64,000 nt of DNA from Octopus bimaculoides (GCF_001194135.2 NC_068984.1:89316647-89380646); one strand, 5' to 3'. Numbered from the stretch's first letter, positions 5,737 to 58,193 are shown. The notes: a model not told the origin generated them from the sequence alone. Made by a program: numbers and translations.

Positions 5737-6128
5737 GGATGGCTGCGTGTTACGAAGTTTGTTTCCCAACCACATGGTTCTGAGTTCAGACCCACTGCAT
5801 GGCACCTTGGGAACAAGTGTCTTCTATAACTTCGGGCCAACCAAGGCCTTGTGAATGAATTTGGTAGACGGAAGCTGAAAGAAACCCATCAATTGTGCGT
5901 GTGTGTGTGTGTGTCTTTGTGTCTGTGTTTGTCCTCCACCACCGCTTAACAACCAGTGTTGGTATATGTATGTCCCTGTAACTTAGCAGTTTGGCAAAGA
6001 GACTAATAGAATAAATACCAGGCTTAAAGAAAAATAAATAAATAGGTACTAGAGACAGTTCATTCAACTAAAAATTCAAGTTGGTGCCCCAACCTGGCTG
6101 CAGACTGAAACAAATAAAAAAAGATGAA
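5737..6128 (+). mobile_element. SINE family A copy (PCYT2 intron)
   Basis: Homologous to 36506-36890 and 28427-28838. Confidence 0.8.
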
Positions 6129-6372: not shown

Positions 6373-8113
6373 TGAAGACATTTGCATCAAGAAGTGATGA
6401 TCTCTAATTGTGGAGGGAACATATGGAAAGGGTAGATTTAGGAAGATGTGAGATGAAGTGGTGAAAAAGGATCTTCAGATGTCGGGCCTCACAGAGGAGA
6501 TGACAAGGGACCGAAACTCCTGGTGGTTTGCTCTACTTGAGAAGACACATCAAACTAAGTAAGATCGTGGTTGACCTTGCATACAAGTATTTTGCCTGCT
6601 AAACATAATGCACTTAAATCTTGTTGAATTTTTGTATAGGTTATCGTTAATTCATACATTGCAATCATAGAATATTATTAGTTGTTATTGTAATTTTACA
6701 ATTTAAACTCTAACATAAGCACTGGTTGTCTTGTGTGTATATATATCATATTTGAAAAAAGAAAAGGAATGACTTCATTGGTAGTTCTAATCAGTTTTAA
6801 TTTATTATTTTTTAATAATATAAATTTTATCAAACTAAAGGATTTATATTATTAAAAAATAATAAATTAGACTGATTAGAACTACCAGTGAAGTCATTCT
6901 TTTTCTCTATTCAAATATACCCTAACTACAAAGGATCTCACACACTTTCCTATATATATANNNNNNNNNNNNNNNNNNNNNNNNNNNNNNNNNNNNNNNN
7001 NNNNNNNNNNNNNNNNNNNNNNNNNNNNNNNNNNNNNNNNNNNNNNNNNNNNNNNNNNNNNNNNNNNNNNNNNNNNNNNNNNNNNNNNNNNNNNNNNNNN
7101 NNNNNNNNNNATATATTTATATATATATATATATATATCATCATCATCATCATCATCATCATCATTGTTTAATTCCGCTTTCCATGCTAGCATGGGTTGG
7201 ACGATTTGACTGAGGACTGGTGAACCAGATGGCTACACCAGGCTCCAATCTGATTTTGCAGAGTTTCTACAGCTGGATGCCCTTCCTAATGCCAACCACT
7301 CTGAGAGTGTAGTGGGTACTTTTACATGCCACCAACACGAAGGCCAGTCAAGCAGTACTGGCAAGGGTCACGCTCGAAATGGTGTATTTTACGTGCCACC
7401 TGCACAGGGGCCAGTCCAGTGGTACTGGCAATGAACTCACTCGAATGTCTTTTCACGTGCCAGAAAGGCAACGTTGGTAACGGTCATATAGTACTTCCTT
7501 TATAAACTGAGATTGTTAATATTACAATACTCAGAAACAGGCTAGAATTGAAGTGCTCAAAATGAGCTAAGATTCAAATTATAGTTTGAATGGAGACAAT
7601 ACAGGTGGAAAACCATAGGAACAATACCCCATCTCCAACAAAAGATTTAATATACGTGTTGTGCATGTTCCTTTTTCTTCGTTATAGTGTATATTATATC
7701 TATTTTCTGTATTGTACATGTTCTTATAATATAATACATGTAAATTTTGTAATATCATATCGTATATATTTATTCACTATATGTTATATCATACTGAAGG
7801 TTTATGTTTCGTATTACATCGTCTTATATTGGATAATATTTTTGTATGGCTCAGAAATTAGGAATACTTATAAATATTTTTAAACATTCTTTATATTTTT
7901 GAAGTTTACGTGTTTATATGCTGGTATACTTTTATTTTATTTTATTTTATTTCATTTTTGGTATTTTTGCTACTGAGAATTGTGTATAATTATTGATTCA
8001 AGGAGGATATGCACACACATGTATATTAAATCTTTTGTTGGAGATGGGGTATTGTTCCTATGGTTTTTTCACCTGTATTGTCTCCATTCAAACTATAATT
8101 TTAATATATATAG

Positions 8114-17096: not shown

Positions 17097-17575
17097 NNNN
17101 NNNNNNNNNNNNNNNNNNNNNNNNNNNNNNNNNNNNNNNNNNNNNNNNNNNNNNNNNNNNNNNNNNNNNNNNNNNNNNNNNNNNNNNNNNNNNNNNNNNN
17201 NNNNNNNNNNNNNNNNNNNNNNNNNNNNNNNNNNNNNNNNNNNNNNNNNNNNNNNNNNNNNNNNNNNNNNNNNNNNNNNNNNNNNNNNNNNNNNNNNNNN
17301 NNNNNNNNNNNNNNNNNNNNNNNNNNNNNNNNNNNNNNNNNNNNNNNNNNNNNNNNNNNNNNNNNNNNNNNNNNNNNNNNNNNNNNNNNNNNNNNNNNNN
17401 NNNNNNNNNNNNNNNNNNNNNNNNNNNNNNNNNNNNNNNNNNNNNNNNNNNNNNNNNNNNNNNNNNNNNNNNNNNNNNNNNNNNNNNNNNNNNNNNNNNN
17501 NNNNNNNNNNNNNNNNNNNNNNNNNNNNNNNNNNNNNNNNNNNNNNNNNNNNNNNNNNNNNNNNNNNNNNNNNNN
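17097..17575. other. Assembly gap hiding the start of the last PCYT2 exon (other gaps: 6961-7110, 20242-20251, 57887-58067, 63494-63503)
   Basis: Runs of n. Confidence 0.98.
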
Positions 17576-29369: not shown

Positions 29370-29780
29370 TTATCTGCTAAAAGAAAAATGGCTACTGTCT
29401 GAAGGTGATGTTTTTGTTAAGCGCCCAATTCGAGCAGCATGGGCCTTAAATAAAACTTCATTTATACGATAATAAAATGGATTAGATGATTCATCAAGTT
29501 CAGGCTCATATTTTTTTATGACTGTATGATCAGCAGTATGCCTTGTGTCCAAAAAGGAGTTAGGAGTTTGCTGTTGTGGGTTATAAGGATGAGGGTGGTT
29601 GACTATTGCTGCAGACATATTAGCAGAGGATCCAGAGGCTTCTGAATAGAGTTTTGATTGAGTGTTGTTTAAACAGTCTACTTGTGGAGGTAGATGATGG
29701 AATTGTTGCTGCTGCCAAAGCTTATAATTTTGATCTGGGTGATTGTTCTCAGCTACAGGAGGGTCAGGGCTTGGTGTTGA
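29370..29780 (-). CDS. FAM104/VCF-like gene, terminal exon 4: STPSPDPP...YEPELDESSNPFYYRINEVLFKAHAARIGR...FSFSR*
   Basis: ttctttgttgcag| acceptor and a 136-codon stop-terminated frame. The C-terminal YYRINEVLFKAH resembles the FAM104A/VCF1 helix YFHINQTLREAH (comparison from memory, not a search). Confidence 0.75.
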   Translation of the reverse strand, partial: STPSPDPPVAENNHPDQNYKLWQQQQFHHLPPQVDCLNNTQSKLYSEASGSSANMSAAIVNHPHPYNPQQQTPNSFLDTRHTADHTVIKKYEPELDESSNPFYYRINEVLFKAHAARIGRLTKTSPSDSSHFSFSR

Positions 29781-31304
29781 CTGCAACAAAGAAAGATATT
29801 CAATTTAAAGAAAATAACATTTAAATTAGTTTCAGATTTTTGTGACAGATTTTATCAAAGTAAAGATAAACCAATTTTCTCAATTGCTTAGAACCCCTAA
29901 ACATTGGTAACTATATTTGATAAAATTTGAAGCAATAATTTAACTTTTCAAGATTAACATGCATGAAACAAAAATAAATAATTAATGATCATAAACTTCA
30001 GTCAACATAAAAAATGTAGCATTGATCAATAATTAAGCTCCTTTGTAAACAATGCCAATCCTGTCACAAAATACAATAAAATATAAACAATGTAATTCGT
30101 AGATTCTTCTACCCATTTAAATCAATGTTAAAGATCATTTCATTGTGATTGTTGTTATTTATAGCTCTAGATAAACACATTTCTCAACACCATCTTAAAT
30201 CTAACAGCCTAACTAAGCTAAAACAAACCACTCATATATCATCATTTGTTTTTCTAAGACAACATGTTTCCATGTCTCAATTCAGAATTATTTTTTCCGT
30301 GTTACCTAATATTTGTAAGAGTAACCCTTCTACTTACAAAATCTTCTATGGATAATTTCTCTCATAAATGCCCAGCTCTTTTTCATTCAAAATATATCAT
30401 CCAGTCAATTAGAACATCAGAATGACAACATTATGTTGTTGCTGAATGACAAAGGCTTCTTTTTTAAAAGAATACCAAGTAATTGCAGCTATTCCACATC
30501 AAGGAAGTCCAATACAATCACGTCTATAGTTAGTACTAAAACATTCAGATATGCAAAAGTGAATGGACAACAAACTAGATACATCATACTTCACCTTATG
30601 CAGCTAAATACCATATGATAAAATGAGCTGATGAAGCTAATCAATGACATGGCTCCCTACTTTATAACAGGCTATACTAACACCACACCAATAAATCACC
30701 TACACTGTGAAGCAAACTGACTCCACTCTCAGAAGGATATCAGCTAATAAATAGAATTTAATAATTACCTTCAACATATCTGTTGGTTGCATTAGTAGGT
30801 GAGAGAACTTGATGCTCAATCAATCTGTTCTGTAATCATTAGAGGCTTGATTTTATAATATTGAACAGCTACTAACTCTGTGTCAAACCAAGAAAGTCAG
30901 CTTTCCTATTATTTTATGGTTTTGCTGACTCCTGCTAATCTATAAAACTCTATTGCTGGCCTTATTTACCATTATATTATCTAACTCAAGATCAGTTCTT
31001 CATTTCAACTACGCTCTACAGCTCATTTCTAACAAAGTAAATTGTCAAAAAACAGAAAAAAATACTAGAGCTTCCTTAAGCATTTAGTGTGAAACTTTTT
31101 CCACCCAGCTCTACTTTTAGTCCCCTTCTAGGAGTAACATATCTTAAATGCTTCATGTAAACTACATTTTAGACAACTTTTATCAACAGAAAAACTACAG
31201 TACTGCAACATAGGCTTCAGTCATAATATTCAAATGATTACAGTAGCTGAAAAATCTTTCCTAGGAATCAGTAACTTAAGTTTCATCCAATAGAAATGTT
31301 TTAA

Positions 31305-31479
31305 TCCTTTAACATTTAAACTGGCCATATCCAGCATCTCACACCTAACCTACAATCTCATTTAAAAATATATAATTACATCATTGAAATCTCAAAGCTA
31401 CAAGATAATGCATGATTAATTCAAAACATTTTGAATAAATAAGCATTACATTTGACAGATTAATCTGAATGCTAAAGGG
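31305..31479. mobile_element. piggyBac-like MITE (copy 2)
   Basis: TTAA-TCCTTTAACATT ... AATGCTAAAGGG-TTAA, giving a TTAA target site on both sides. Confidence 0.75.
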
Positions 31480-31823
31480 TTAAACAATTTATACCCAAAA
31501 TTTACTATAGTTTATCTATCTCTTCTTTTGTAGATAATAAATTAACTGAACCTAAATATCAAATATTAATTTACAGCTGAAATAAATACAGGCTTTTATA
31601 AAATATCAAGAATTTAAAGAAATATTTGATCATATTCATAATAAGAAGGTAATAGTAAATGAACAAGTTCATTCATCTATATGGACAAAATTTCATGTAC
31701 TAACAGAAATGTAAACCTATCCCCAACACACAAAATTTTATTTTTACTATTCTTAATTTTTGAAAGAAATAACTAACTTTCATAAGCACATTATGTTCTT
31801 AAGAAGCAGTAGCAAATAATTAC

Positions 31824-31848
31824 CTCATGAGAGCAATCAGGTCTTCCC
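31824..31848 (-). CDS. FAM104/VCF-like gene, 25-nt microexon 3: GRPDCSHE
   Basis: tttatttttcag| and GAG|gtaa boundaries. Its length is exactly what is needed to join phase-2 exon 2 to phase-0 exon 4. Confidence 0.75.
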
Positions 31849-32099
31849 CTGAAAAATAAAGAAAAATAATTAAGTTAATTTAATTGAAAGCAACTACAAG
31901 CACATTAGAAAAACTCAGGTCAAGTATTGTCAAGATTAAGGAATAATCTATGTATATTGATAATAAAAGTTGACTGTAAACTGCAGTCTGCACTGAATTT
32001 CTGGTTATAGTTCATGAAACAGTACAATATAAAGTTTGCTGATACCAGTTGCAGTCATGAAAACTGTAAACAGATGAATACATTGAATCTTACACCATA

Positions 32100-32900
32100 A
32101 TTTACACAACCTTGCCAGACACAGTAAATTTTGAGTTGTAACTGCTGATGTACATGAAGAAGAGTGCATCACAAAATCATCTATTTCTAAGGTCTCCTCT
32201 AATCATTTTGACAAAAACTTCTTGAAAAATCTTTACTGAATTTGAAATAGTCAGTTATTCAAGCTTGTTCTTTGGATGTTGCTCAGAGAAATGCAGGGTC
32301 ATTAGACATTTTAATGCTCCATCTGGAACTGCACTAAAACTAGAGTCTAACTCCATTAACAATGATCATACAGCTGCTGTCGATGAACAAATCAATTTAT
32401 ACATGAAGATATTATATCTCTACTCAGCTCTTCTGTCTGTTCTGTTTATCCAGCAAAGAACAAAGTTTGCTGAAACTACAAATCAGTTGGACATTTTTCA
32501 CAAGAATATTGCTCAAAGAGAGTGACATTAGCATCCACAATCCTTACTACAACAAGCATACATCAAGGAAATGGACATATATCAGCATATATTTGGCTAA
32601 CCAATGTTCTATGTTTCAGTGCCATCAGTTTCAAAGATGATGTTTGAAAGATTCCTGCTCCCAAAGTGGAGTAATGTCTTCATATTGGCTGGCTACTCAA
32701 ACAGCCTGTTTACAGATTTCAAACCACCTTGTGAGGCTTTTCTCTCAAATGTTAAGTGTAAATGTTTTACTTAACCTGTGTTCGTCTATGAATCTGAGAC
32801 ATGACTTTCCTAAAAGTCCTCTAGTTGAAGCTAGAAAATGTAATTCTCATCAGCTATATAAACCCACAGCTCTTCCACCTGTAACTAGTTTGATAAGTGC
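32100..32900 (-). mobile_element. Highly degraded CR1-like LINE RT fragment
   Basis: Minus-strand remnants KVMSQI...KPHK, resembling the KAFDKVPH region. Many stops. Confidence 0.4.
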
Positions 32901-33011
32901 CAATGCATGAAACTCTTGGACCTTGAGTCACTCTGTTGCTTCAGCTAAATGTTAATAAAAATATACTTATACTCAAAATTTTTCCTGTTTGCATCACCAT
33001 ACCTGTATATA

Positions 33012-34130
33012 CAGGGTGCATAAGATATTTGAGGATAGATTTATGTTTATATAAAAAAAAAACAGATATATAATAACAGATAACTTTATTTAGCAAAAAG
33101 TGCTATGAGGATAAAAATAATCCTTCTTTTCTATAATGTTATTCAATAAAGCAACCTTCAGCTTCAACAACTGCTTCTATATGAATCAAGTGGTCCTGGC
33201 TCATTTTGGACATTACTCTGATTATGGCAGCTTTCAAAGGATCTTTGGTGTTATGGGCTTGTTCATTGACCACTCTCTCTCAACAACGCTCCACATGTAA
33301 TAGTCCAATGGATTGAGATCTGGGGAATTAGGAGGCCAAATGTTAGGGGTTATGTGATCGTGAAAATTTTCAGTCATCCATTCCTGTCTTACTAGAGCCA
33401 TTTGTGATAGTGCAGAGTCTTACTGAAACACATATGGCTTTCCATTGCATATACTGTCTATCCAGGGCATAACTATTGTTTCCAGGACCTCAATGTAGGC
33501 GACAGAGTTAACTCTAAGGCCTTGTGGAAAGAAGTAAGGAGCTTCATTGTTTACAACCCCTAAAACCATGACAGTTGCAGGGAATTTTGTATGCATAACA
33601 CTTGGAACTTCAGAAGGGTCTGCACATAACCATCTGTCATTTCTTGTTAACTTTTTGATCTTTCTCGTTTGAGAAAAACCAAATCAAATCATCTTCTGCT
33701 GGATTTTTCCGTTTGTTTAAGAACGTTTTAGATTTGATGTAGTGATTTTCTTTTGCTTTTTCTGACAAACTGACTTTTCCTCATCATATAAGACTTCTGT
33801 CTGATGTCTTCATGGACAACATTTCTGACTGTTCCTTCTGACACATGGAAATCTTTTGCAATTGACCTCATGGACTTTCTGGGACTGTAATCAATGGTCT
33901 GTTGAACTTGCTGGATAAATTCAAGCATTCTGATGATTTCAGAGCGTTTAGAATGCTTTTTATGCTTTAATACTGGTGATACGTTTCCATCTTCAGTCTC
34001 TAGCTCCATACAAACTTTGTAGATGAAAGATCTGGTGACTTTTAAAAATCAAGATATTTCTAAATCGTTGTGCTCAGCCTTTATAATCACAATAACAACA
34101 TGCTTCCTCATTTCTTAAGCTGAGGGTCTG
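33012..34130 (-). mobile_element. Degenerate mariner/maT-like (DD37D-type) transposon
   Basis: TA-CAGGGTGC end at 33010-33019. Minus ORF 33728-34009 contains SPRKSMRSIAKDFHVSEGTVRNVVHED (HTH). The right boundary is approximate. Confidence 0.7.
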
Positions 34131-34227
34131 CCATTATTATTTTCTGGAATAAGGATTGTACAGAGTTAACAAAAAATGCAGTAATGACCCAACAAAGGTA
34201 TGTCCTCAAATACCTTATGCATAAGGT

Positions 34228-34269
<42 letters not shown>

Positions 34270-34580
34270 TGTGTATTTCTTCTATCTTAATGAATAAAAA
34301 TTCTTCTGATAGAATAAATGGGTTAATAGAAACCAATGTAGCAAAGAACACAGGTTGTAATCCTTTGAAACATATGTAGGAATAAAGTATGCAATTATAA
34401 CATGCGTTTTCTCCATTCCTTAAATTCTTATACTCAAATACCCAAAATTTCAAGGAGTTCCTGCCTTAAAAACAGGAACTAAACCACAGTTATTTTGTGT
34501 TCTTTGCTACATTGGTTTCTATTAACCCATTTATTCTATCAGAAGAATTTTTATTCATTAAGATAGAAGAAATACACATA

Positions 34581-34611
<31 letters not shown>

Positions 34612-35379
34612 AGTGGTCAAATGGAATGCTGCTTGGCTGACCAAGACATCAACTTGGCAATGACACCCTGGTCTCATGCCACTTCCACTCCACCAGTCAT
34701 TCACTACATCTGTCTGTGTTTGAACTGTCTCTGCACAGAGACCACCTGGACTCATGCCTTTGCCATGAACAGGAATTAATCTTCTTCCTTTATTCCTTTG
34801 CTCCTTATGGTCTCAATTTGCCACCTCTCTTCATCTAACACCAACCCCACAGATTCCCTTGCACCTCCCACATTCAACTGCCCCTCCTCTCCACCCCCAC
34901 ACTGCCTAACTCGGTACCCTCAACACACACCACTATATAAACACCCCTACATATTATTCAATTCAGTACACACCACACACCATTATGCATACTCCCACAC
35001 CCACTCACATGCATTCACACACACCTTCCCACACCATACACTCAAGCACCCAATATCTGCCTACCTACACCTCACACCTCTATGCATTCTCCCACAACAC
35101 ACAGTATGCACTCCAAAAAGCACAAAACTCCTGAACACAAACAATATACAAACATATGCATAAACACAACTACTTTTGCATACAAACATACACAATACAC
35201 ATGGACACTATAGGGTCACAGACACACATACACATCACCTGAACAAGCACACATCAACTGCTAAGTACAAGCATTTGCATATGCATGCACACGCACAAAT
35301 ACACATCACACTCTAGGTTACTTGTATACATACACAGGCCCATGCATTTGTGCACACATGATAACCCCACACATATGTA

Positions 35380-36231
35380 CAGGGTGCAGTGAATATATTG
35401 TCGTCTAAATTACACAAAAATGAAAATAACACTGACATCTCATTTTAACGGATATACTTATCACCAAAATTACTAAATACTAAAGAATAAATTTATTCAG
35501 CAAAATCGCCATTGGCTTCAACCTCAGCATCCAGACGACTTTGGAATCTCCTGCAACTCTTCTGGATGGTCTCCTTGTTGCTGAATGCTGCCATAATCCT
35601 TGCCTTCAGTTCATCTTTGGTGTTACAAGGAGTTTTGTTGGTCTCTTGCTTAACTGTGCCCCACACATAATAATCAAGAGGGTTGCAGTCTGGGGAGTGG
35701 CCAGATGTTAGGGGTGATGTGGTTGCAGAAATTGTCTGACAGCCATGACTGTGTTCTCCTGCTTGTGTGAAATGGTGCAAAGTCCTGTTGCCAGACATAG
35801 GGTCTTCCAGCAGTCACCCTCTTGACCCAGGGCAGCACTACCTCCTCCAGGCACTTGATGTAGGCCTGTGTTGAGTCTGAAGTTGTGTGGGAAGATGAAT
35901 GGAGGCATAACGTCACCACCACTAGTGATCACTCCACACACCGTGATGTTGACTGGATGTTTGATTTTTATCACTCTCGGTACATGCACCGCACTCAGAT
36001 TGACCCCAAACACTCTGAAATGCTCATATTGGAGCTTCCAGTGCGAATGCCAAGCAGTACAGCATGTTGTTTTCAAATTTCTGGCAGAGTGAAATGTGTC
36101 ATGGTATTGTTTTTCTCAGACAGTGCCCAAGTGATGCTACTATACAGTGTAGTCAACAAAATCAAAAACAAACAATGTGCATGCGCGAAATTAAAATTAT
36201 AAAATGGCGACAATTTACCCATCGCACCCTG
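35380..36231 (-). mobile_element. Internally deleted maT/DD37D mariner-like transposon
   Basis: TIRs CAGGGTGCAGTG...ATTGTCG and CGACAATTTACCCATCGCACCCTG. Minus fragments PYVWQQDFAPFH and SPDCNPLDYYVWG. Confidence 0.85.
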
Positions 36232-36505
36232 CACATACGTCCATAGGCAGACACACATACACACCAGTACATGAAATGCACATCGCTCCACATATGTACG
36301 CACTAGGTTACTTATAAAAATAAACACACACACACAGGGCCACATAATTTTAAGCTTGTCCACACATACATACGCATGTACTCGCCCCCATTCACAATAC
36401 ACACACACATGCTTGTGCACCTTAGTTCATCTGGGTCACCATTATTATCTCCCTTTCATTAAGCCTTTTTCTTCCAGCCATTTCATCATGTTGAACTGTT
36501 AATCC

Positions 36506-36890
36506 CTCTTTTACTCTTTTATTTGTTTCAGTCATTTGACTGCGGCCATGCTGGAGCACTGCCTTTAGTCGAGCAAATCAACCCGGGACTTATTCTTTGT
36601 AAGCCTAGTACTTATTCTATCGGTCTCTTTTGCCGAACTGCTAAGTTACACCAGCATCAGTTGTCAAGCAATGCTAGGGGGACAAACACAGACACACAAA
36701 CATATACATATATATATATATATATACGACGGGCTTCTTTCAGTTTCCGTCTACCAAATCCACTCACAAGGCTTTGATCGGCCCGAGGCTATAGCAGAAG
36801 ACACTTGCCCAAGGTGCCACGCAGTGGGAATGAACCCGGAACCATGTGGTTGGTAAGCAAGCTACTTACCACACAGCCACTCCTGCGCCT
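36506..36890 (-). mobile_element. tRNA-derived SINE family A (central TA/CA microsatellite), well-preserved copy
   Basis: Head GGCGCAGGAGTGGCTGTGTGGTAAG...GGTTCATTCCC. Other copies at about 4200-4380 (-), 5737-6128 (+), 24555-24720 (+), 28427-28838 (+), 52981-53150 (+) and 58790-58880 (-). Confidence 0.85.
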
Positions 36891-37439
36891 ATACATTTTT
36901 TCTCCAAATCTTTTCTGTCAAAGAGCGTAGGCTTGAAACATCAAAGACTTTTTCGTTTTTTCTGAGTGTTAAGCTAATACACCAGCTTGTTGTTCCTTCA
37001 CCTGTCTTCGTCTTTTGTCTTCTGTAAATTTGAACTATATACATATCTATGTGTGTGTCTCTGTCCCCCACTACCATTTAACAACCAGGGTTGGCATGTA
37101 TATGTCCCAATAACTTAGCAGTTTGACAAAAGAAACCAATAGAATAAGCACCAGGTTGATAAGTTTGATTAAAATTTTCAAGGCAGTGCCTCAGCATGGT
37201 TACAGTCTTACGACTGAAACAAGATAACAGATTAGTGAATAATGACAAATGTCCCCACCACTAAACACCCATTTGTTATCTAAGTTACACAGTATAAAAT
37301 AATTACGTGCAATTTAATCTAGGAAAATTGAAACCTTTCCTTGATTACCTGATGCCATGCAATGCTAAATAACTATTATGACCCTTAGATTTCTTTAGTT
37401 ACTTCTCTAACTGGGTGTCCATTCTCTGAACTTGGTCAA

Positions 37440-38330
37440 CTGCTAGAAATCTTCATTTTCCTTTGCAAAAATGTCACTTATTTGCTTTACCTCTGCTTAA
37501 AACATTAATAGTTAATGATCCAGTTTCATTGATCTTATCTGAAGGGCCACTACATACTAATACTGATGCTTTTGAAACTGTAATTTCAATTATCCTTCCA
37601 CAGTGTAATAAACCTGTTCCTTTATTCCTCAGAAAATTGTTTTGCCCTGAACAAAGTCTCCCAGCAACTGAAAAGAAGGCTAGGGCTATCACAGAAAGTT
37701 TTAAGAGAATTAAAAAAAATTTATTTCAAGACTATTTTACATGAAACATCGACCCACAAGTGATCTCATATTTAAAGGGTTAGTCGCAAAAGTAGAGGAA
37801 AAACAAGCAACAAGATTTTCACTGGCACATTGAAATAGCACCACTCTACAACTATAGTGTCTGAAACATATCAAGCAAAGATAAGGTTGCTCGTGATGCT
37901 TTTACCAGATGTTCCTCTATAATATTCCCTGGTATCACAAATTCAGGTAATCTTTTGCATCATTCTGCAATAACTTGATTATGGCACTACATCAGATTTA
38001 AGGACTTGTAATTTTTTTCAGGAGATGTTACAAAAATCTGTGATAACTGTATCATATACTCCTCCCATCCTCTTCATGGACTTATCAAGTTCACATAATT
38101 ATTTGAGTGCCTCAGTATCAACTTCAAAGGTCTTCTAATCTTATATAACTCTTACCACTAACTGATTGTGATTATAGATGAATGCTCAAGATCTCCCTTT
38201 GTAACTGTGCATTTTGGTATGAGAGTTGCTTCAACACATTTCTCAGGTTTGGTGCTCCAGTTTCACTCTACTCAAACCAAGGATCTCAATTTGTCTTGAG
38301 ATCTCCATATCAACCAACTAAAAACAGTCA
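37440..38330 (+). mobile_element. Degraded Ty3/Gypsy pol fragment (RNase H to integrase zinc finger)
   Basis: TDAFETVISIILPQCNKPVPLFLRKL..EQSLPATEKKARAITES and KDKVARDAFTR match Gypsy RNase H motifs. Confidence 0.65.
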
Positions 38331-38942
38331 AGTAAAATAACTAAATGCAATTTTAAGAACAATAATGCTCTTCATTCAAGATGGCCAACAGAAAAATGGT
38401 TTTAAGAAAAACATTTCATGTGACTAGATTCTTCACCTAATATTTCATGATAGGCTAATTTTTAATGTTGTTCATCAATAACTTGGTCTTTATTTGGTGG
38501 CACCCTGAAGTTGGAGAAAATTTGCTAAGACACTTTAATCCTAACAATAAATATATGCCAAGGTTGATTAATGATTAATGCTAGTCGTCACTATTTTTGT
38601 TTCAGATACCCTTGTGATCAAATTAATACTGTCTTAACTAAAGTTATAATTCTATCTAGAAGACTTCTCTGTAAGAATTGATGAAACTCTAGTTCCACTG
38701 AGGAGTATTCCATTGGTAATTGCTGCAAGGCTGACTTGAAGAATCTAATTCAAGCAAGCTTTGGATCTGCTGATGACTATGCTGAAAAGTACACAAGTTC
38801 AGGAAATGTGTGAACAGGAAAATCTCTTTATCACTAAACCCAACTTAGTCTACAAACTTCTGCAAATTATAAAATCTCTTTAGTTCCATAACATACAATA
38901 TTATTGAAAACTTTGATACAGAAATGATTGCTTTAAACTTAC

Positions 38943-39029
38943 TCAATATAGAGGCTATTTATTCTTTTAGATATCGGAATACTTTCATCAAATTCATCCT
39001 CAAGATTCCGAGGTCGTTTGCGACAGCAA
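38943..39029 (-). CDS. FAM104/VCF-like gene, exon 2: CCRKRPRNLEDEFDESIPISKRINSLYI(E)
   Basis: Long pyrimidine tract with cctag| acceptor and |gtaagt donor, 87 nt, phase 2/2. Basic RKRPR...SKR bipartite-NLS-like motif. Confidence 0.8.
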
Positions 39030-39849
39030 CTAGGAAAAGAAAGAAAAAAAAAAAAACATTAAAGCAGGAATATACAAAAAATATTGAAAATGATCTATGG
39101 AAGGCAAATTAAATATTTAAACAGAAATTAGGCATAGAATGGCATAATTCTAAATGCTTTATTAAATTAGTGTTAAGAGCTTTTGTAATTCTGTTCAAAA
39201 CCTATACAAGAATCATTAAACCACTCCTCTAAAACAGATTTTCTTCTATCAGAAACCAAAATATAGCTTTGTAAAAGCAAAAATACTACAAAATAAGACT
39301 ACTTGAGCAAAGCTAACCAGGTTAAATTTACATAATGGAATGCAGTGGTCCCTACTGTCATCACTAGCTGACTTTAAAGACTAGAGTAACTCCAATCTAC
39401 ACTCCAAAAATTTAGATCAACTGATTTTACTGGTTGTTGCTTTTACATTTGAACAAGGTGCTTTTGTCTAATTGCTTGGATAATCTTAGAATGACATATG
39501 TGAGATTGTACTGCATTCTAGTTTTTTTTCCCCAGCAAAAGGTCTAGTTTAATGCATTTGGCATAATGTTTAGTGTAGAGTCTAAGAAAGACAAATCAGG
39601 TGGGTGCACAGGGTGAGCTAGAGCAGAGGTGGTGAACAGATTGCTAATTCAGTAGAGTAAAAGCTAAGTAAAAAAAATGGTAAAAGATTTAGTGAGAAGA
39701 ACTAGCATTATCTTTCAGACAGTGTAATGACAAGTGAATCAATCAATCAATCAATCAATCAATCACATAAATTTTTATTACATTGCTGAGTGCTACATTA
39801 GCGCCAGGTTAAATGCATGAATAATATTCTAATATTTGTTTACTTTGCA

Positions 39850-41240
39850 GAGAGTCAGCAACTTAGACCTTGAGATGCAAATTTAACTCTTTTGGAGGGA
39901 CATAACGAGAACATTTGCCAAGGGTAGTTAAGGTAGAATTGGTAATATTGAGAGATTTGAGGGGAAATAATTGTTGTGTAGCAGTATGATATGAGGTATG
40001 TAGATATCAAACAATCATGAGATGGTCGAGATGATAATGGTTGTGTAAAGATCAGATTTAAAGACAAAAAAAGAGATCTAGAATGTTGAGAGTTTTCTAT
40101 ATTCATCTAATATTTGAACAAGTAATTAATGTTGCTGGTTTAAACTGTTCAATATAGAAGAACATTTGGCCTGTGTTGGTTTGAGAGGAGTGTGAGAAAA
40201 AGAAATAAGGTCCATTGAAAGTCATTGAACTAACTTCTTCTGAGAGTTGAGATAGATGTCCTTCATACAGAGAAAATAAAAATGTTGGTGTTTGGATGTT
40301 TAAAGAGTGGTAGAGAGAGCAAATAAAATTAAGGAGTGGGTAAGACAAAGTTCGAGTCAGAGTAACTTTATTATGAATGTTAAATGAGGTGGGAAAATGG
40401 ATTTAATATATATGTAAACTTCACCTTCAGAATGTTTGAATATAGAATGTAGCATGGATAGCGAGTTCGTATTAGTAGGTATCACTGTAGAGCTCTATAG
40501 AAGGGACAACAAGCACTGGTTGATCATGCAAAAACCCACTTTTTGCTTGATCACATTTTTATGTCAAAATACATTTTTTCCATGGACAATTATATATCAT
40601 TTGAAAGTTCTGGATGTGAACTTTCCTCTCATATACTTTTGATCAAAATCCAACACTTACAATATCATGTCAGGTCTCTTTAATCACCATCATATTTCCA
40701 CCCATTCGCAATGTTTGTTCCATTTTTGTTTTTGACTGCTGAACAGTAGTGCTCGTTCAAGATAAAGTACAGTAGAAATTAGATCTAAATATTCTCAAAA
40801 ATTCATTGATACTGAGAGATTTGTTACCAGATGGATTGACATGTGGTATGCATGTTAGTAGTTGGAGAGTAGGGTTGGAGTCTACAGATACAAGAGTAGA
40901 GAAGTGAGAATTGTCCAGTGGAGTGTTTCTTGTTCATTTATTAGTATTTTTATGGTTTGGAAGGGAAATAGGAGACTTTAGCTAGATGCTAACTATTGTT
41001 TTGTCCCTGTTAGTAGCCCAGTAGTTAGTCAGTGATATCAAATGAGTCTCTTGAAATCTTGTTCCCAGATGAGGAGGGACATCAATATAAACAGGGGTCA
41101 AGTTACTGGTTTACATAACAGCTGTTAGGGAGCCTAGAAAGTGTAGTTGAAAACAAAGCATAGAAAGGCTGTTATCCTCAAACTGAGACCTGACTTCACT
41201 GATGAGGCCACAATAAAACCGTAACTTGTCCAGAATTGCC
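39850..41240. mobile_element. Very degraded retroelement, possibly Penelope-like
   Basis: Purine-skewed + strand similar in composition to the 61.3-62.1 kb copy. Ends in a CTGATGAGGCC...GTAACTTGTC hammerhead-like remnant. Confidence 0.3.
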
Positions 41241-44084
41241 TCCCATACTTATTAGAAAATGAAAATACTAATTATTGATTAATATATTTTTTTTTTTTGC
41301 CTTACTGCATACTTCTTTCTGGCTAGCTTTTTTATGTTTTATGTACTTATATAAATGTTGAAGCCAACTTCACTGTTTTCTAAATTCTTTAAACAATTCT
41401 ACCTTTCCTACGTCAACCAAAATGCAATCTTAAGAGATGCAGTAAAATATACAATGGAAAATAAGTTTTTATGGCTAAATAATATTTATTTCGATTAAAA
41501 TCGATCATGAAAGAGAGTAAGGTAAAATCGTCCCAGACTAGATCTTAACTCTTAGTCATTACTATGCTTGACACAAATGCAAAAACCCTGCAGCTGGCAT
41601 TGTTATTACTGTGAAAAATACCCAAGAGATTCACATGATTAGAAAGAAGTTTTATTTTTTGTGTATATCTTATGTGTTATATAATATATATATATATATA
41701 TATATACAAACATACTGGAATTTTAATTAGAAGCACCCATTTTCCAGATGTTATGTGGTGACCTTGACATTAAACGAACTTAAAATGACTATCAGAAAGC
41801 CATCCATTGGCCTGAACTTCGAAATACTCTAGCCAATAAGAGAGCCTCTACGTGGTTGATCACCCTGCTAAAAATAGCAGCCATATTTTTCTCAAATCAC
41901 ATATTGCCGTCATGGATAGGACAATCACGACTGGAACGCCTTAGATCTAGACCAGATTGAGGTTAAACAACAACTTCAAAATAATCATCTCAGTCGATTT
42001 TATGGAATATATAAGTTATGGCTCGTACTTTGAGATTTAATATCTAGTTGGTTAAAACAGCTCACAGCACTAGTAAAACGATTATGTATTGTATTTACAA
42101 ATGTCGTTGTTCTCATGGAAGAAACAAATAGTTCTGTTTCATCATTTTTTGTTCTCTGTTCAAATCTCGTTGGAGAAGACTTTACTACTCATCCATCTGA
42201 GGCGGACGCTGTACAATACCGATCAAATTCACTAAACCCGACTAAGCAATGTACTCTAGTACAAGACAAGATACCACTATAGTTATATATTAAAAACTCT
42301 GAACAAAATGCATTTTTAACAGACATCCATTGAAATACGAATGTCCACCAGTCTATTTGTTAAAGCATGAATTTTGATTGCTGCTTCGTACTAAAACTTC
42401 ATTATTACACGAATTACTCTGTGTGTATGTGCGTGCGTGCGCGCGTAAACAGTTGAATATACTTGAATTAAATAAATTTTCTACCTATTTATTTGAATTT
42501 TTCATGAGAAATTTGAAAACCAGAATTTATACGTAAGTTAATTAGCATCATAACTTGCAAAATTTCAAGTCCTAAACACTGGTGAGCTGAAAATGATACA
42601 GCATCAATCAGCTGATTCAGAAACACTGACAAAGGCAACGCTAAATAAATACAATGTCTAAAAATAGAAAGCAGCAGAAAGAAAAAAAAAGAGAAAGATG
42701 AAATTGCTCAAACTTTATTTGAAAATACTTCATGTGATGACTTCAACAGAAAATAAAAAGGGAAAGGAAGATCATTGGTAATATTACTAGTAGGTTAGTT
42801 AGACACCCATGTCGACAAAATACGATACTAACCAAACTTCATATGCACCAAATAAAAATTAGCTACCAAATAGTTATGGATAAACAAATTTATTGCGAGT
42901 AGATTTATTCTTTAAGTTCATAAAGAAAGTATTCCGGATTTAAATTTTAAAATAATTAAAAAAATATTTTGTGATCAAACATTATTTAACCTATATGATA
43001 CGTTTTCGTAACCTTTAAAAATGGGGTGAAAGAAATTAGCAAGAGTGTACGAGACACAGATCACAAGGGACATTATACATTCATGGAACAGTGTATAAAG
43101 CACTTTGTTGATTACCTATTATATATACTGCAAAACACGTGAGGAATAAACGTATAAGTATATGAAACATACACGAAACGAATTAAATGTGCGAGGAACA
43201 TATTAACAGTATAAATTTACACGGCTACTGAATAATGACAAGCGTATATGCTGTCATTATGAATTCTAATTAAACATCTATTTTTAGGATGAAGCTACCA
43301 CGATCAACTACATTTTACAGTCCCTAGTTTTAGATACGGCATTGCGGTGTCTACATGATTCTATGACTATCGGCTGTATTGCATGAATATCGATTTACAT
43401 AAATAGAACTCTTATTTATAAATTAGTGGAAATCAGACTGGCTTTCACTTTCTACTTTTAAGGGTATAAGTGACGTCAAACGAAACCAGATCATAACAAG
43501 CCTTTATGTGGTCCCTTCACTGGCTAGAAATAGCAGATACAAACACCATCCTACAGTTTAAAGATGAAGGCATGAAAAAAATAATGAAGTGTCAGAAAAT
43601 ATATATAATAGATAAATAAATACACAAGTAAATAAACTGTGACAGACTGTCACAGTTTTGATCAGCCCAGCTGAATTGGGAGCAAATAAGTGCCAAATCA
43701 CGGACTTGTCGAGAACTTATACACGACAAATTGCCATCTAGATTGTCCAGAGCGACAACTCATTATTCTTTTTACATATTTACAAGTTTGTATCGGTATG
43801 AATAACTATTTACTAACTATTCGTGGTGTCGAATTAATTCATATTTCCACATCGTCCTATAACACTAATACTAAAAACAGACAATAATGTTAATGCATTA
43901 CGCAACGTAAGCTGTAGCGTGAAGTTAGAGGATTCTTCAAAGTTAGGTTGATAAAACTAAAATTGTTCGGGATGTAAGACACAAAAAAAAATCGAATGAT
44001 TCCATTAAATTTAGAGAAATATTTGCAAGGATCCTGCACGAATGATAATTAGGTTTATTACTTAAGAAATATATGCAAACATAC

Positions 44085-44140
44085 CTTAATGTCATATCAA
44101 GGTTTTCGAAATGGCTATCCAAATCAACACCAGTCCTCAT
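44085..44140 (-). CDS. FAM104/VCF-like gene, coding exon 1: MRTGVDLDSHFENLDMTL(S)
   Basis: ACAACC-ATG start context and AG|gtatgt donor. Phase 2 matches the next exon. It lies directly downstream of promoter motifs. Confidence 0.7.
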
Positions 44141-51912: not shown

Positions 51913-53306
51913 TGGTATTTCTTTCAAACAAAAATACTGTGTTGCATCCTCATAAACTTGGACCATACTAGGAATTTCAGTGATATTAATGAGTTTTAGG
52001 GTCTTTTGTAATCACAACACTTGGTATTTATCTTAGTTCTGTATGCACTGCACCGTATATCAATTCTCTTCTGAAGTCTTGCCTATATTTCTTTATCTTT
52101 GGAATTATGGGTTAGAGAAATTGCATATTTTAAACATTACTTTAGCACAACAACTACATGTCGCTGAGTTATTGGGAATCATGGAAAAGTGTTGGTACAT
52201 TGCTAATGAGTGGTAGTTAATTGTACCTAATTCATTACTTATTTGTAACAAAGCTAAACAATGTGTCACTCACAACAAAATTTGTTATCTGTTTATGCGC
52301 ATAAAGTATGTATTAATGCCAACTTAATTTACCTTACAGTTCATTTGACAGTTCACGATTTCGTATTTTTTCACTTCTTTTTAATCATTCCTTTCGCTCC
52401 AGCTACTACAAAGACGAGCCAAACAGCCATCAGTGAAAGCTATAGATCAAGAACACTATCCTTACTTTTTATTTTCTTAACATTTATACAATAGACGGAA
52501 TCAAATAGATGAAAAAAAAAACAAAAAAAAACTTTTAAGACTTATAAGAATGATACGCGTAATCACGGAGGTGTGAGTTTGAGTCTCATAGCTGGCCGCC
52601 TACACTTATTCGAGTCTCATCGCTGGTTGCCTACACTTTTTTCTGCAAAATAGGGTGTCTTATCCTGTTCAGGCTATATTATTAGCATTATCCTGCATTT
52701 GAGAATTTAAAATCACTTCTTTAAAATCTATATAAAAAGACCGAATGTTAAAAATACTGAAATAATTTCAACAAAATTTATTTTCCAATGTTTGAAGTTG
52801 ACTTGAAAAGTGAAGGAAATAGTTTTCACATTACCATATACAAATGGCAAAGGTTATCCCCCTCTATCCTGAGCGTTTATATGAAAGATCCGAATTAATT
52901 ATTCAGTAACAGTGAACTTCAAGTGAAAGGCATTGTTTTAGTTTTACAAACGAATTGATATGCATAATAAAATAATTACGTAGGCGTGTGGGCAAGAAAC
53001 TGGCTTCGCAACTACGAGCTTTTGGATTCAGTTCCACTCGTGGCACCTTAGGGTAGGTGTCTTCAACTATATCCCTGGGTGGACCAATGACTTGTGAGTG
53101 AATTTGGTAGATGGAAACTATGTGAAGCCCGTTGTATGTATGTATGGATGGATGGATGTCTGTATATACGTATGTATGTATGTATGTATGTATGGTGTGT
53201 GTGTGCATGCCCTTGTATTTGTGTTTTTGTTTTAGTCGAAGATAAGCTACATCGACAACTTTGTTGAAAAATATATGTTGTTTCACCAGACAACCCCAAA
53301 ATTTTG

Positions 53307-53401
53307 GGTAATTTTTCAGATTAACACCCACACGATTTCCACTAGGGTGTTAGGTTTAGGGTTTTATGGTCAGGGTCAGGGTTAGGGTTTTAGGGTTAGG
53401 A

Positions 53402-53449
<48 letters not shown>

Positions 53450-53651
53450 TGTTAGGGTTAGGGTTAGGATTAGGGTTAGTGTTAGGGTTACAGTTTTAGG
53501 GTCAGGTTTAGGGTTTTAGGGTTAGGGTTAGGATTAGGGTTAGGGTTTAGGGCTAGGGTTAGTGTTAGAGTTAGGGTTAGGATTAGGATTAGGTTTAGGG
53601 TTTTAGGGTTAAGGTTAGGTAATTGTGCGGGTGTTAATCTGAAAAATTACC
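53307..53651. mobile_element. MITE-like element (Merlin- or hAT-like) with telomeric (TTAGGG)n core
   Basis: 31-bp TIRs at 53307-53337 and 53621-53651 with 2 mismatches. Direct repeat AAATTTTG at 53299-53306 and 53652-53659. Confidence 0.85.
53341..53620 (+). repeat. Interstitial telomere-like array (TTAGGG with TTTAGGG, TTTTAGGG, TTAGGA, TTAGTG and TCAGGG variants)
   Basis: Directly visible tandem hexamer repeat of about 280 bp. Confidence 0.95.
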
Positions 53652-54704
53652 AAATTTTGATCATTATTGGATTTAACTCACTTTCATACTATTTAAAAAA
53701 AATTTCAGCCTTAAGATGGGAGTTATTGTTGACTATTTGGATAATATCAGTTGATCGTAGTCATTCAGCTAGCTATTTTACAAGGGTAAAACCGTAGGTG
53801 TATGATTTGCATGCAGAACACTCTCTTGAAGTTTTATCCCTCAGCAATTTCGTATACTATGTATTTAATTGAATCAGTTAAGTACATAACTTCATTTTTT
53901 ATAATTCAGACAAGAGAAAGGTAAAAGTTAATCCTGGTAGAATTTAATCTCAAAATATTAAGATAGCGAATTGTTTTCAGTACGCAGGTATTGCAGACTT
54001 TAACTGTTTCTAAGCGTGACAGTTTAGAATTATATAATTTGGTAATTATTCAGTTAAGGGATATTAAAAAAGTAAACAAAAATTAAGGGGGAGATGACTA
54101 TTAAAGGGACGTAAATATGTCAACTTACTGTTTGTAATAAGGTGACATGGCGAATGAGAATTTTCGCATGTGTATAAATTCATAATTAGTTGATGCCGTA
54201 CCAACCACTGATAAACTTTGTCTTGTGATTCAGCTAATTGGGTTGGGGGTGATATTCCAAAATTCCTCCAAGATTGATTGAGGTTGAGAATTTCAATTTC
54301 GGAAGCAATAAATTGCGGTCCTGCTGGTCAGCCATGTGCCATTCTAATCAATTTCAAAGTAAATAATATCCAGTATTTATGTCGAGCAGTAAGTTGACTT
54401 ATTTATGTCCCTTTACTAGTTATCTCCCTCTTAATTTTATTTACTTTTTTAATATCTCTAAACTGAACAATTACCTATATTTTTATTAGTCAATGCTTAT
54501 GCAAGGTTTAGTATTATGATAATTTGACAGAAAAGAAATATGCCTGTATGTGTTTGCAGCGAAATTATCTGCTGAAAGATAATAATAATAATAAACTACA
54601 TATAATAGATAATTTTTTCTTTCTATGTAATACCAGCAATGCAAATCCTTAACATTTAATTCAAATTGTTAAAAGTTCATTCCGCCAAACGTTATGATGT
54701 ACAG

Positions 54705-54830
54705 CAGCGGTTCTCAATCGGTCCATATGGCCCCGAGGTCCATATACGATTTTGGGGGTCCACACAATAAAATAATAAATTGGGGATCCACAACAGCATT
54801 ATAAGGGTCCCTGAAAAATTTTTGCTTTAG
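54705..54830. mobile_element. hAT (Charlie-like) MITE left end, interrupted by an RTE 3' fragment
   Basis: Begins CAGCGGTTCTCAA and contains GGGGTCC subterminal motifs. Confidence 0.55.
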
Positions 54831-55560
54831 AGGCAATGACAGGAGACTGAGACCTTTGGAGATATGCTGTGATTGAGAAGACCCAGCAACTAAAGTGAGA
54901 TTGCAGCCACACATGTCTGGCCCAGTTAAGAGTACCCCTGATGCATCGGGCGATATGATATGCTTGAGAAGTCCTGTTGAGTCAAGTAAAACCAATATCG
55001 TAGCTGTGGCCAGTGCCCCCTGACTGGTTCCTGTGCTGGTGGCATGTAAAAAGCACCATCCGAATGTGGTCGATGCCAGTACCCACTGACTGGCTCCCGT
55101 GCTGGTGGCACGTAAAAAGCAGTATCTGAATATGATCGACACCAGGACTGCCTGACTGGCCTCCGTGCCTGTGGCATGTAAAAAGCACCATCCGAACGTG
55201 GCCGATGCCAGTACCCACTGACTACCCCTGTGCCGGTGGCACGTAAAAAGCACCATCCGAACGTGATCGACGCCAGGCCCGCCTGACTGGCTCCTGTGCT
55301 GGTGGCACATAAAAAGCACCATCCGAACGTGATCGACGCCAGTCCCGCCTGACTGGCTCCTGTACTGGTGGCATGTAAAAAGCACCCACTGCACTCTTGG
55401 AGTGGTTGGCATTAGGAAGGGCATCCAGCTGTAGAAATATTGCCAGATCAGACTGGAGCCTGGTGCACCCGCTGGCTCTCCAGACCTCAGTCAAACCGTC
55501 CAACCTGCCAGCATAGAAAATGGATGTTAAACGATGATGATTATTATGATGATGATGATG
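54830..55560 (+). mobile_element. RTE-type LINE 3' end with tandem-repeat-bearing 3' UTR and (GAT)n tail
   Basis: The ORF end reads DLWRYAVIEKT. The tail is gatgatt...gatgatgatgatg. Homologous copies lie at about 7140-7480 (-), 13180-13400 (-), 24720-25020 (-), 25790-26235 (+) and 27290-27430 (-). Confidence 0.7.
55009..55385 (+). repeat. About 66-bp minisatellite, about 5.7 units
   Basis: Unit GCCAGTxCCxxCTGACTGGCTCCTGTGCTGGTGGCAYGTAAAAAGCACCATCCGAACGTGATCGAC starts near 55009, 55075, 55141, 55207, 55272 and 55338. Confidence 0.9.
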
Positions 55561-56360: not shown

Positions 56361-56910
56361 TGCAATAAAATGTAAACATAATAGACCTGACATAGTAATT
56401 TGGGATAGAGAAGGGAAACTATGTACAATTGTGGAAATCAGCTGCCCAGCAGATGTTAACATAAAGCTAAAGATCAGCGAAAAAGAAAACATGCACGTTG
56501 AACTACTACTACTCTGTCCAGATTACAGGTTCAGGTTTATACCTGTAATTCTTGGGGTACTGGGATATGTAACACACTGCCTAAATACCAGTCTTGAGAA
56601 ATTAAGTTTTTCAAAGTCAGAAAGAAGAAAGCTGATTCGAAGATTACAAATCCAAGCCATCACTGGAACTGTAAAAATCTGTAAAACTTTCCAGAAGTCT
56701 ATCATTTAAGTATACATGATCATGTCTAGACATGCAACTTTATGAATGAGAATACATACATAAAACAAAACATGCAAATCTGCACATATACATACAAAAC
56801 TACCCTGTTGATGTTGTTGAAGTTCCAATGAAGGAGCCTTGTATCTAGGTTAGAACCTGGCTCTATCTCTGTTGGTAAGAAGTCTTGAAATAAAACTTTA
56901 CAATGACATG
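56361..56910 (+). mobile_element. 5'-truncated R4/Dong-like non-LTR element (restriction-like endonuclease domain and 3' UTR)
   Basis: HNRPDIVIWDREGKLCTIVEISCP...FIPVILGVLG is the REL PD-(D/E)xK signature. Stop at 56709. (CATA)n lies on both sides. Confidence 0.8.
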
Positions 56911-57640: not shown

Positions 57641-58193
57641 CACGCATGTGTGACATCCTATAACTGACTGTCTCGCTACTTTTGTAGGGTCTTCTTTGTT
57701 GCTGTTACATATTGTGAAATTTTAAAATTACGTCAAAAGTTTCAAATTTGGTATATTGAAATAATTCTCCGCGTTAAATCTAATTTTGTTATTAATTTGT
57801 TCCAAGAAAAATTGCAGAAAAATGTTACTGAGCTTTAAAGTTTAACCAATTTTACCTAATCAGAAAACAGGATTTTAGAAGTTGGCNNNNNNNNNNNNNN
57901 NNNNNNNNNNNNNNNNNNNNNNNNNNNNNNNNNNNNNNNNNNNNNNNNNNNNNNNNNNNNNNNNNNNNNNNNNNNNNNNNNNNNNNNNNNNNNNNNNNNN
58001 NNNNNNNNNNNNNNNNNNNNNNNNNNNNNNNNNNNNNNNNNNNNNNNNNNNNNNNNNNNNNNNNNNNTCAATGAATTTTTTCTTGCTAAAAATTGCACAA
58101 ATCTGTCCTGATCAAGAGACCTATCTGTCGGAGAAGGTATGGTCTGACATGGAATAAACAAAAATTTATGTAAGACATTCTGTTGTAAAAATT

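Follow-up and report, generated by a model that had tools for sequence, protein, structure and literature searches.

Repeats of telomeric type that lie inside chromosomes are usually attributed to chromosome fusions or to the action of telomerase at breaks. In Oxytricha, telomere-bearing transposable elements are linked to the host telomere repeat, and in Paramecium Helitrons are reported to cap chromosomes. Molluscs carry MITEs (miniature inverted-repeat transposable elements) with tandem-repeat cores, among them pearl/CvA of oysters and DTC84 of Donax, which are short and non-coding and can seed satellite DNA when they move; their cores are ~80–170-bp satellite monomers and microsatellites, not a telomere motif, and their termini and superfamilies are either undefined or different from those of the element described here. 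That mobile elements transport telomere repeats has been proposed, mostly on co-location alone (reviewed in PMC6410037). Here we describe a 345-bp element with a telomere-like core in a 64,000-nucleotide stretch of the Octopus bimaculoides genome (GCF_001194135.2, NC_068984.1:89316647–89380646; hereafter the window, with positions counted from its first letter).

Two further pieces of background bear on this locus. The Merlin superfamily of DNA transposons has terminal inverted repeats (TIRs) of 24–462 bp with a conserved 5'-GG, target site duplications (TSDs) of 8 or 9 bp and, in many of its elements, internal tandem repeats that could be spread in this way; O. bimaculoides is unusually rich in Merlin, with 191 protein hits (PMC8101967). 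In addition, TTAGGG is the sole experimentally determined telomere motif of cephalopods (PMC13218726, citing Adachi 2014; PMC6160780). Against this background, we give a probability of roughly 0.75 to the reading that the element is a non-autonomous cut-and-paste MITE, most likely a Merlin, that carries the array as passive cargo and was inserted in the O. bimaculoides lineage.

Structure of the element and its empty site

Read directly, the element occupies 53307–53651, between two exact copies of AAATTTTG at 53299–53306 and 53652–53659; an identical 8-mer adjoining both ends would arise by chance with a probability of about 4^-8. The left TIR (53307–53337, plus strand) is GGTAATTTTTCAGATTAACACCCACACGATT, with a 5'-GG end, and the right TIR (53621–53651, minus strand) reads GGTAATTTTTCAGATTAACACCCGCACAATT as its reverse complement. 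The arms match at 29 of 31 positions, so that the 31-bp TIRs with two mismatches described in an earlier note on this DNA, as well as the 8-bp direct repeat that it placed against both of them, are correct to the base. An inverted-repeat search returned somewhat longer arms (53304–53340 and 53618–53654; 37 nt, 89% complementary), and pairing reaches 34 bp of the element itself, with additional mismatches. The 23-nt terminal core occurs at two sites only in the whole window, even with up to three mismatches allowed (0.00 expected from shuffles). Inward of the left TIR lies a subterminal segment, TCCACTAGGGTG (53338–53349, plus strand), at whose TAGGG the array begins; the array itself (53350–53620) has its G-rich strand on the plus strand and runs up to the right TIR. 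The only open reading frames (ORFs) of the element are short read-throughs of the repeat, and scans of the window for Rfam families and tRNAs gave no match. With a length of 345 bp, no coding sequence and TIRs and a TSD as its borders, the element has the make-up of a MITE.

The element lies ~9 kb upstream of LOC106869975, a gene that spans 29370–44140 of the window on the minus strand. The O. bimaculoides gene locus (GCA_001194135.2, CM046604.1) is 100% identical to window 19370–54140, and the ORF at 29373–29789 (minus strand) shares 99% identity with a hypothetical protein from the annotations of O. vulgaris and O. sinensis, with which an O. bimaculoides protein clusters. Orthologous loci were compared from O. 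vulgaris (L001) and from O. sinensis (L002); both show ~90% identity to the window and extend just beyond the insertion site. In both species BLAST aligns the left flank up to 53306 and the right flank from 53652, and the two alignments share the same 8 bases: the site reads ...GACAACCCCAAAATTTTGATCATTATTGGATTTA..., with one AAATTTTG and no element. Comparison of the filled with the empty site thus shows that the boundaries of the element are GG...CC and that 8 bp of target were duplicated, and because two independent assemblies agree, an assembly artefact is excluded. The feature is a lineage-specific transposon insertion with an 8-bp TSD. The non-autonomous, TIR- and TSD-bounded DNA transposon that the earlier note had proposed is therefore borne out by exact empty sites in two sister species, the very comparison that it had recommended.

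The insertion postdates the split of O. bimaculoides from the O. vulgaris/O. sinensis lineage, a split across which the flanks are ~10% diverged. The earlier description as recently inserted holds in the sense that the element is younger than this split; nothing narrower follows. Both TSD copies are intact, and the two differences between the arms (CCCACAC versus CCCGCAC, and CACGATT versus CACAATT) each set a CpG on one arm against a CpA on the other. At the second of these sites G appears ancestral, since a related O. sinensis element (see below) has CACGATT. The arms were probably identical at insertion, as GGTAATTTTTCAGATTAACACCCGCACGATT, each having lost one CpG since then. A rival reading concerns polarity: the element might be ancestral and have been lost precisely in the O. 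vulgaris/O. sinensis lineage, through the sorting of an old polymorphism or through an excision whose repair drew on an empty homologue, and two closely related comparison species do not allow gain and loss to be polarised with an outgroup. However, cut-and-paste excision normally leaves a footprint, whereas the empty sites are exact, and an intact TSD together with terminal differences confined to CpGs argues for a young insertion; we therefore consider such a loss barely credible.

Other differences between the species lie close by. Adjoining a (TGTA)n microsatellite ~90 bp to the left of the site (window 53210–53217 versus L001:251–1528), O. vulgaris and O. sinensis contain a further ~1.3 kb that O. 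bimaculoides lacks, and a 12-bp indel, TTTGTTTTAAAG, lies 20 bp from the insertion site. The O. vulgaris annotation also places a gene with a 79-amino-acid product at L001:1–2147, a range that takes in the empty site; the O. bimaculoides counterpart has no gene call.

The telomere-like array

Tandem Repeats Finder reports the array at 53349–53619, with a period of 6, 43 copies, 78% matches and 9% indels; a further periodicity, of 26, is also present. The window contains 24 near-matches to TTAGGGTTAGGG, every one of them within the array (0.11 expected by chance), seven of the array's 12-mers being exact copies. Plain TTAGGG accounts for 14 of the ~45 units and never runs perfectly for more than three in a row; the remainder are TTTAGGG (6), TTTTAGGG (4), TTAGGA (5), TTAGTG (3), TCAGGG (2) and single variants. 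The order of these variants is itself repeated: T[TC]AGG-TTTAGGG-TTTTA[T]GG occurs at 53350, 53501 and 53589, where it heads three higher-order blocks of identical variant order, and a repeat search finds the blocks 83–88% identical to one another. The interior had earlier been taken for (TTAGGG)n, a description that does not survive at this level of degeneracy. The pattern is instead that of a small satellite which block duplications have reshaped. The suggestion that the array could seed G-quadruplexes holds as far as the presence of three canonical motifs (53373–53395, 53405–53445 and 53537–53558) and no further, and any binding of telomere proteins or fragility at the array is speculation.

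For the array, we favour an origin in which it was picked up by, or grew in, an ancestral element and was then reshaped by block duplication, so that it would have arrived as cargo and would not have been made by telomerase at this site. This is favoured because the array fills the element from arm to arm, has decayed much further than either the TSD or the termini and has diverged internal blocks, and because its TTTTAGGG and TTTTAGAG units recur in two other octopus arrays. Alternatively, a very short element may have been inserted, with the interior growing later, through repeats that telomerase added at a double-strand break or through slippage from the TAGGG seed in CCACTAGGGTG, and then decaying. 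A seed did exist, in that the subterminal CACTAGGG is homologous to CACTAAG of the related element; telomerase-mediated insertion of telomeric repeats at breaks is documented for vertebrates (PMC8537989); and the minimum number of independent mutations in the array may be near what the lineage could have accumulated. Nonetheless, an array without a perfect run of more than three units, in blocks diverged to 83–88% identity, sits poorly with an intact TSD and with termini that differ at CpGs only. Variant units shared with two other octopus arrays point to an inherited type of satellite and not to a fresh product of telomerase, and an element of ~75 bp, made of termini alone, would be unusual. 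Later growth at the site is accordingly, in our judgement, an unlikely origin for the array, one that we would nevertheless keep in view.

A related element and the Merlin assignment

Octopus DNA for comparison was reached through proteins, from the O. bimaculoides Merlin KOF79200.1 (PMC8101967 supplement) to octopus Merlin proteins with a PF12762 domain and from these to their loci. One locus fetched for its Merlin gene (L005; O. sinensis CM016860.1) also contained, by chance, an element related to that of the window: L005:161–3272, which is 3.1 kb long, non-coding and foldback-like. Its termini, GGTAAAATTACAGATTATCACCCCCACGATT, are identical at both ends and match those of the window element at 27 of 31 positions; counting subterminal bases, both ends read GGTAAAATTACAGATTATCACCCCCACGATTTTCACTAAG and match at 33 of 40, the segment TCCACTAGGGTG being homologous to the subterminal TTCACTAAGAAA of the relative. 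It is flanked by an 8-bp TSD of its own, AAAAAAAT. The terminal sequence is thus found beyond one site. The interior consists of 1.4-kb inverted arms (95% identical), ~125-bp subterminal repeats and a TA-rich centre. Both arms hold fragments of a Merlin (DDE_Tnp_IS1595) transposase gene, of the family present in loci L008 and L004 (proteins P0020/P0008). In blastn comparisons the relative matches this Merlin family at 77% over 101 bp (E 3e-15), a piece that falls within the transposase ORF, and at 72% over 123 bp (E 1e-12); in tblastn, FRKETFLENSKLKCQQII matches positions 75–92 of the Merlin transposase at 16 of 18 residues.

Merlin is the likely superfamily for the window element because its ends begin with 5'-GG, its TSD is 8 bp long and its relative holds fragments of a Merlin transposase. 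The ends, GGTAATT...AATTACC, have the GG placed by the empty site itself, and the TIR length of 31 bp lies inside the Merlin range. The earlier note had named hAT, P and Merlin, and of these the same features favour Merlin. Termini of hAT elements are of the YARNG type (CAG/TAG-type) and those of P elements are CATG; for hAT the length of the TSD would fit, but the termini GGTAA do not. Another superfamily with an 8-bp TSD (hAT, P, some Mutator-like elements or a rare group such as Novosib or Zisupton) seems to us quite improbable as the source. A TSD of 8 bp does not by itself separate these groups, and a transposase gene between the exact termini of the window element was not found in the octopus DNA fetched. 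Yet ends of GG...CC are neither YARNG nor CATG, the relative with 27 of 31 terminal positions in common has Merlin fragments in both arms, and octopus Merlins likewise combine GG ends with 8-bp TSDs.

The octopus loci include several such Merlins. An 8.7-kb element encodes a 305-amino-acid PF12762 protein between GG-started TIRs of ~354 bp, with 8-bp TSDs (GCAAATCT, CAAGGCTT). It is present in three copies, two of them in O. sinensis and one in O. vulgaris (L005:4267–12984; L007:4253–12988, approximately; L006:3886–12941, approximately), and since these are 98–99.6% identical, recent activity in Octopus is suggested. We rejected this element as the direct parent of the window element, as its termini, GGCGATGTTTCG..., have only GG in common with it. 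A 470-bp Merlin MITE at L008:10779–11248 (O. sinensis VCDQ01004827.1) has the termini of the 8.7-kb Merlin and a microsatellite interior; its arms are perfect over 44 bp (GGGCGATGTTTCGC..., of which the first G is flank), its TSD is CAAAAGAG / CAGAAGAG, and it is inserted directly 3' of another Merlin transposase ORF, annotated as partial. The outermost inverted repeat of that second Merlin copy, GGTACTATTTAAGA / GGTGCTACTTGAGA, matches GGTAATTTTTCAGA of the window element at 11 of 14 positions, and no TSD can be seen at that copy. In two Logan contigs that contain Merlin ORFs, L009 and L010, there were no recognisable termini and no match to the window TIR.

Proposed history, breadth of the family and known systems

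If this assignment is right, a Merlin-type DDE transposase would have bound the GG-ended termini, acting in trans because the element has no coding capacity. The element would have been excised from a donor site and inserted at a staggered 8-bp cut in AAATTTTG, upstream of LOC106869975, where the filling of the gaps would have duplicated the 8 bp, all of this in the O. bimaculoides lineage after its split from the O. vulgaris/O. sinensis lineage.

Several observations weigh against this history. First, the O. sinensis relative contains no telomere-like array, its 125-bp subterminal repeats and TA-rich DNA standing in that place. Second, the three Merlin termini examined differ from those of the window element, save for the GG and the 11 of 14 first bases of one of them, and ~150 kb of fetched octopus DNA contained no autonomous Merlin with the exact termini of the window element (GGTAAWWTTWCAGATTA). 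Third, if the variants of the array arose once and were spread by block duplication, the minimum of mutations amounts to only ~5–9% of its length, and a load this small leaves room for decay at the site after insertion. Finally, neither the window nor the fetched octopus DNA yielded a second copy of the element, with or without a telomeric core, and when 5.8 billion proteins were searched for the peptides that translation of the termini would give (VIFQINT..., GVNLKNY), no candidate came up. Little weight attaches to this last outcome, as the database seems not to include naive ORFs from this genome: exact matches to the window ORFs at 52903–53331, 54714–55424 and 29370–29789 were likewise absent from it. 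Metagenome contigs scanned for the 23-nt terminus gave no match, a negative that is also of little weight. The claim of a mobile telomere cassette dispersing interstitial telomeric sequence thus reduces, on what was found, to a single insertion, with a sole relative that lacks the telomeric core.

Telomere-like arrays themselves were met more than once. Three occur in ~216 kb of octopus DNA, and all three lie between inverted repeats, although these numbers are tiny and come from loci chosen for their Merlin genes. In O. bimaculoides (LGKD02092233.1), an inverted-repeat structure at L004:5565–6294 has arms of ~230 bp, and at its centre (5899–6022) degenerate TTAGGG-like repeats face repeats of CCCTAA type; the structure lies 1.5–1.8 kb downstream of a Merlin transposase ORF. 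In the O. sinensis locus L008, a structure at ~7130–7620 contains an array of ~100 bp (7389–7489) that includes TTTTAGAG and TTTTAGGG variants and lies between imperfect inverted repeats (7177–7221 and 7538–7582), and a Merlin transposase ORF follows 2.5 kb downstream. Both arrays are situated within 2.6 kb of copies of one Merlin family, and both have the TTTTAGGG and TTTTAGAG units in common with the array of the window. The arms of the three structures are unrelated to one another, and for the two further ones, the boundaries of which are uncertain, no TSD could be called. A broader proposal, which we put forward tentatively and regard as doubtful on so small a set of sequences, is that internal telomere-like arrays in octopus are mostly transposon cargo: unrelated inverted-repeat families would share a decayed satellite, and transposition, including that of Merlin, would be the main route by which arrays are seeded. 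No firmer is the suggestion that the satellite would be TTAGGG mixed with TTTTAGGG or TTTTAGAG units. If the proposal were true, seeding by transposons along chromosome arms may affect the binding of telomere proteins or the load of G-quadruplexes.

The window also contains repeats and decayed elements of other kinds. At 55009–55386, 1.4 kb to the right of the element, a 66-bp unit is repeated in tandem, in 5.7 copies and with periods of 131 and 197 at a higher order. Decayed ORFs, judged by eye, include a mariner-like one at 105–395, a Tc1-like one with a helix-turn-helix part at 33.7–36.1 kb (33728–34009 and 35493–36076) and a retroelement-like one with the look of a reverse transcriptase at 56431–56709. 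Assembly gaps (N runs) occupy 6961–7110, 17097–17575 and 57887–58067.

The locus shows at the level of sequence, as a proof of principle for an animal, that a telomere-like array can be placed inside a chromosome by a transposon. It also adds a described non-autonomous family to Merlin, assuming the assignment above, in a species in which that superfamily is unusually abundant. Should the family prove to be multi-copy, scattered tracts of telomere-like sequence in octopus genomes would find an explanation in it, and its dated, polymorphic insertions would serve for testing telomere-protein binding, G-quadruplex formation and breakage. A TIR- and TSD-bounded element whose core is telomere-like and whose empty site has been demonstrated had no prior report in the full-text literature searched, a search that was incomplete and did not extend to Repbase and Dfam. 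MITEs that bear tandem repeats, and Merlins with internal repeats, are already known; it is the telomere-like core that differs.

Among described systems, the non-autonomous elements of Merlin come closest. The window element resembles them in its 5'-GG termini, in a TIR length within their range, in its 8-bp TSD and in having internal tandem repeats (PMC8101967). In contrast to most Merlins in Repbase, which have repeats of 10–113 bp, its interior is an array of telomere-like hexamers, and no autonomous partner with its termini was found in the octopus DNA fetched. A Repbase Merlin of a mollusc, Merlin-1_Aplcal of Aplysia californica, is listed with a period-6 array of 39.5 copies at 2231–2475, on the same scale; its motif is not given (PMC8101967, S1 Table).

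Short interstitial telomeric sequences inserted by telomerase at double-strand breaks, as described by Nergadze and colleagues (PMC8537989), share with the window element an internal array that related species lack at the orthologous site. Such sequences, however, are not known to have inverted termini or an 8-bp duplication and start out near-perfect, whereas the array described here, with 78% matches and at most three perfect units in a row, is degenerate, arranged in blocks and bounded by TIRs and a TSD. The telomere-bearing elements of ciliates differ in another respect, as their repeats lie at or beyond the element ends and are tied to chromosome ends or to DNA elimination, while in the octopus element the repeats form the interior, probably as cargo, at an intergenic site.

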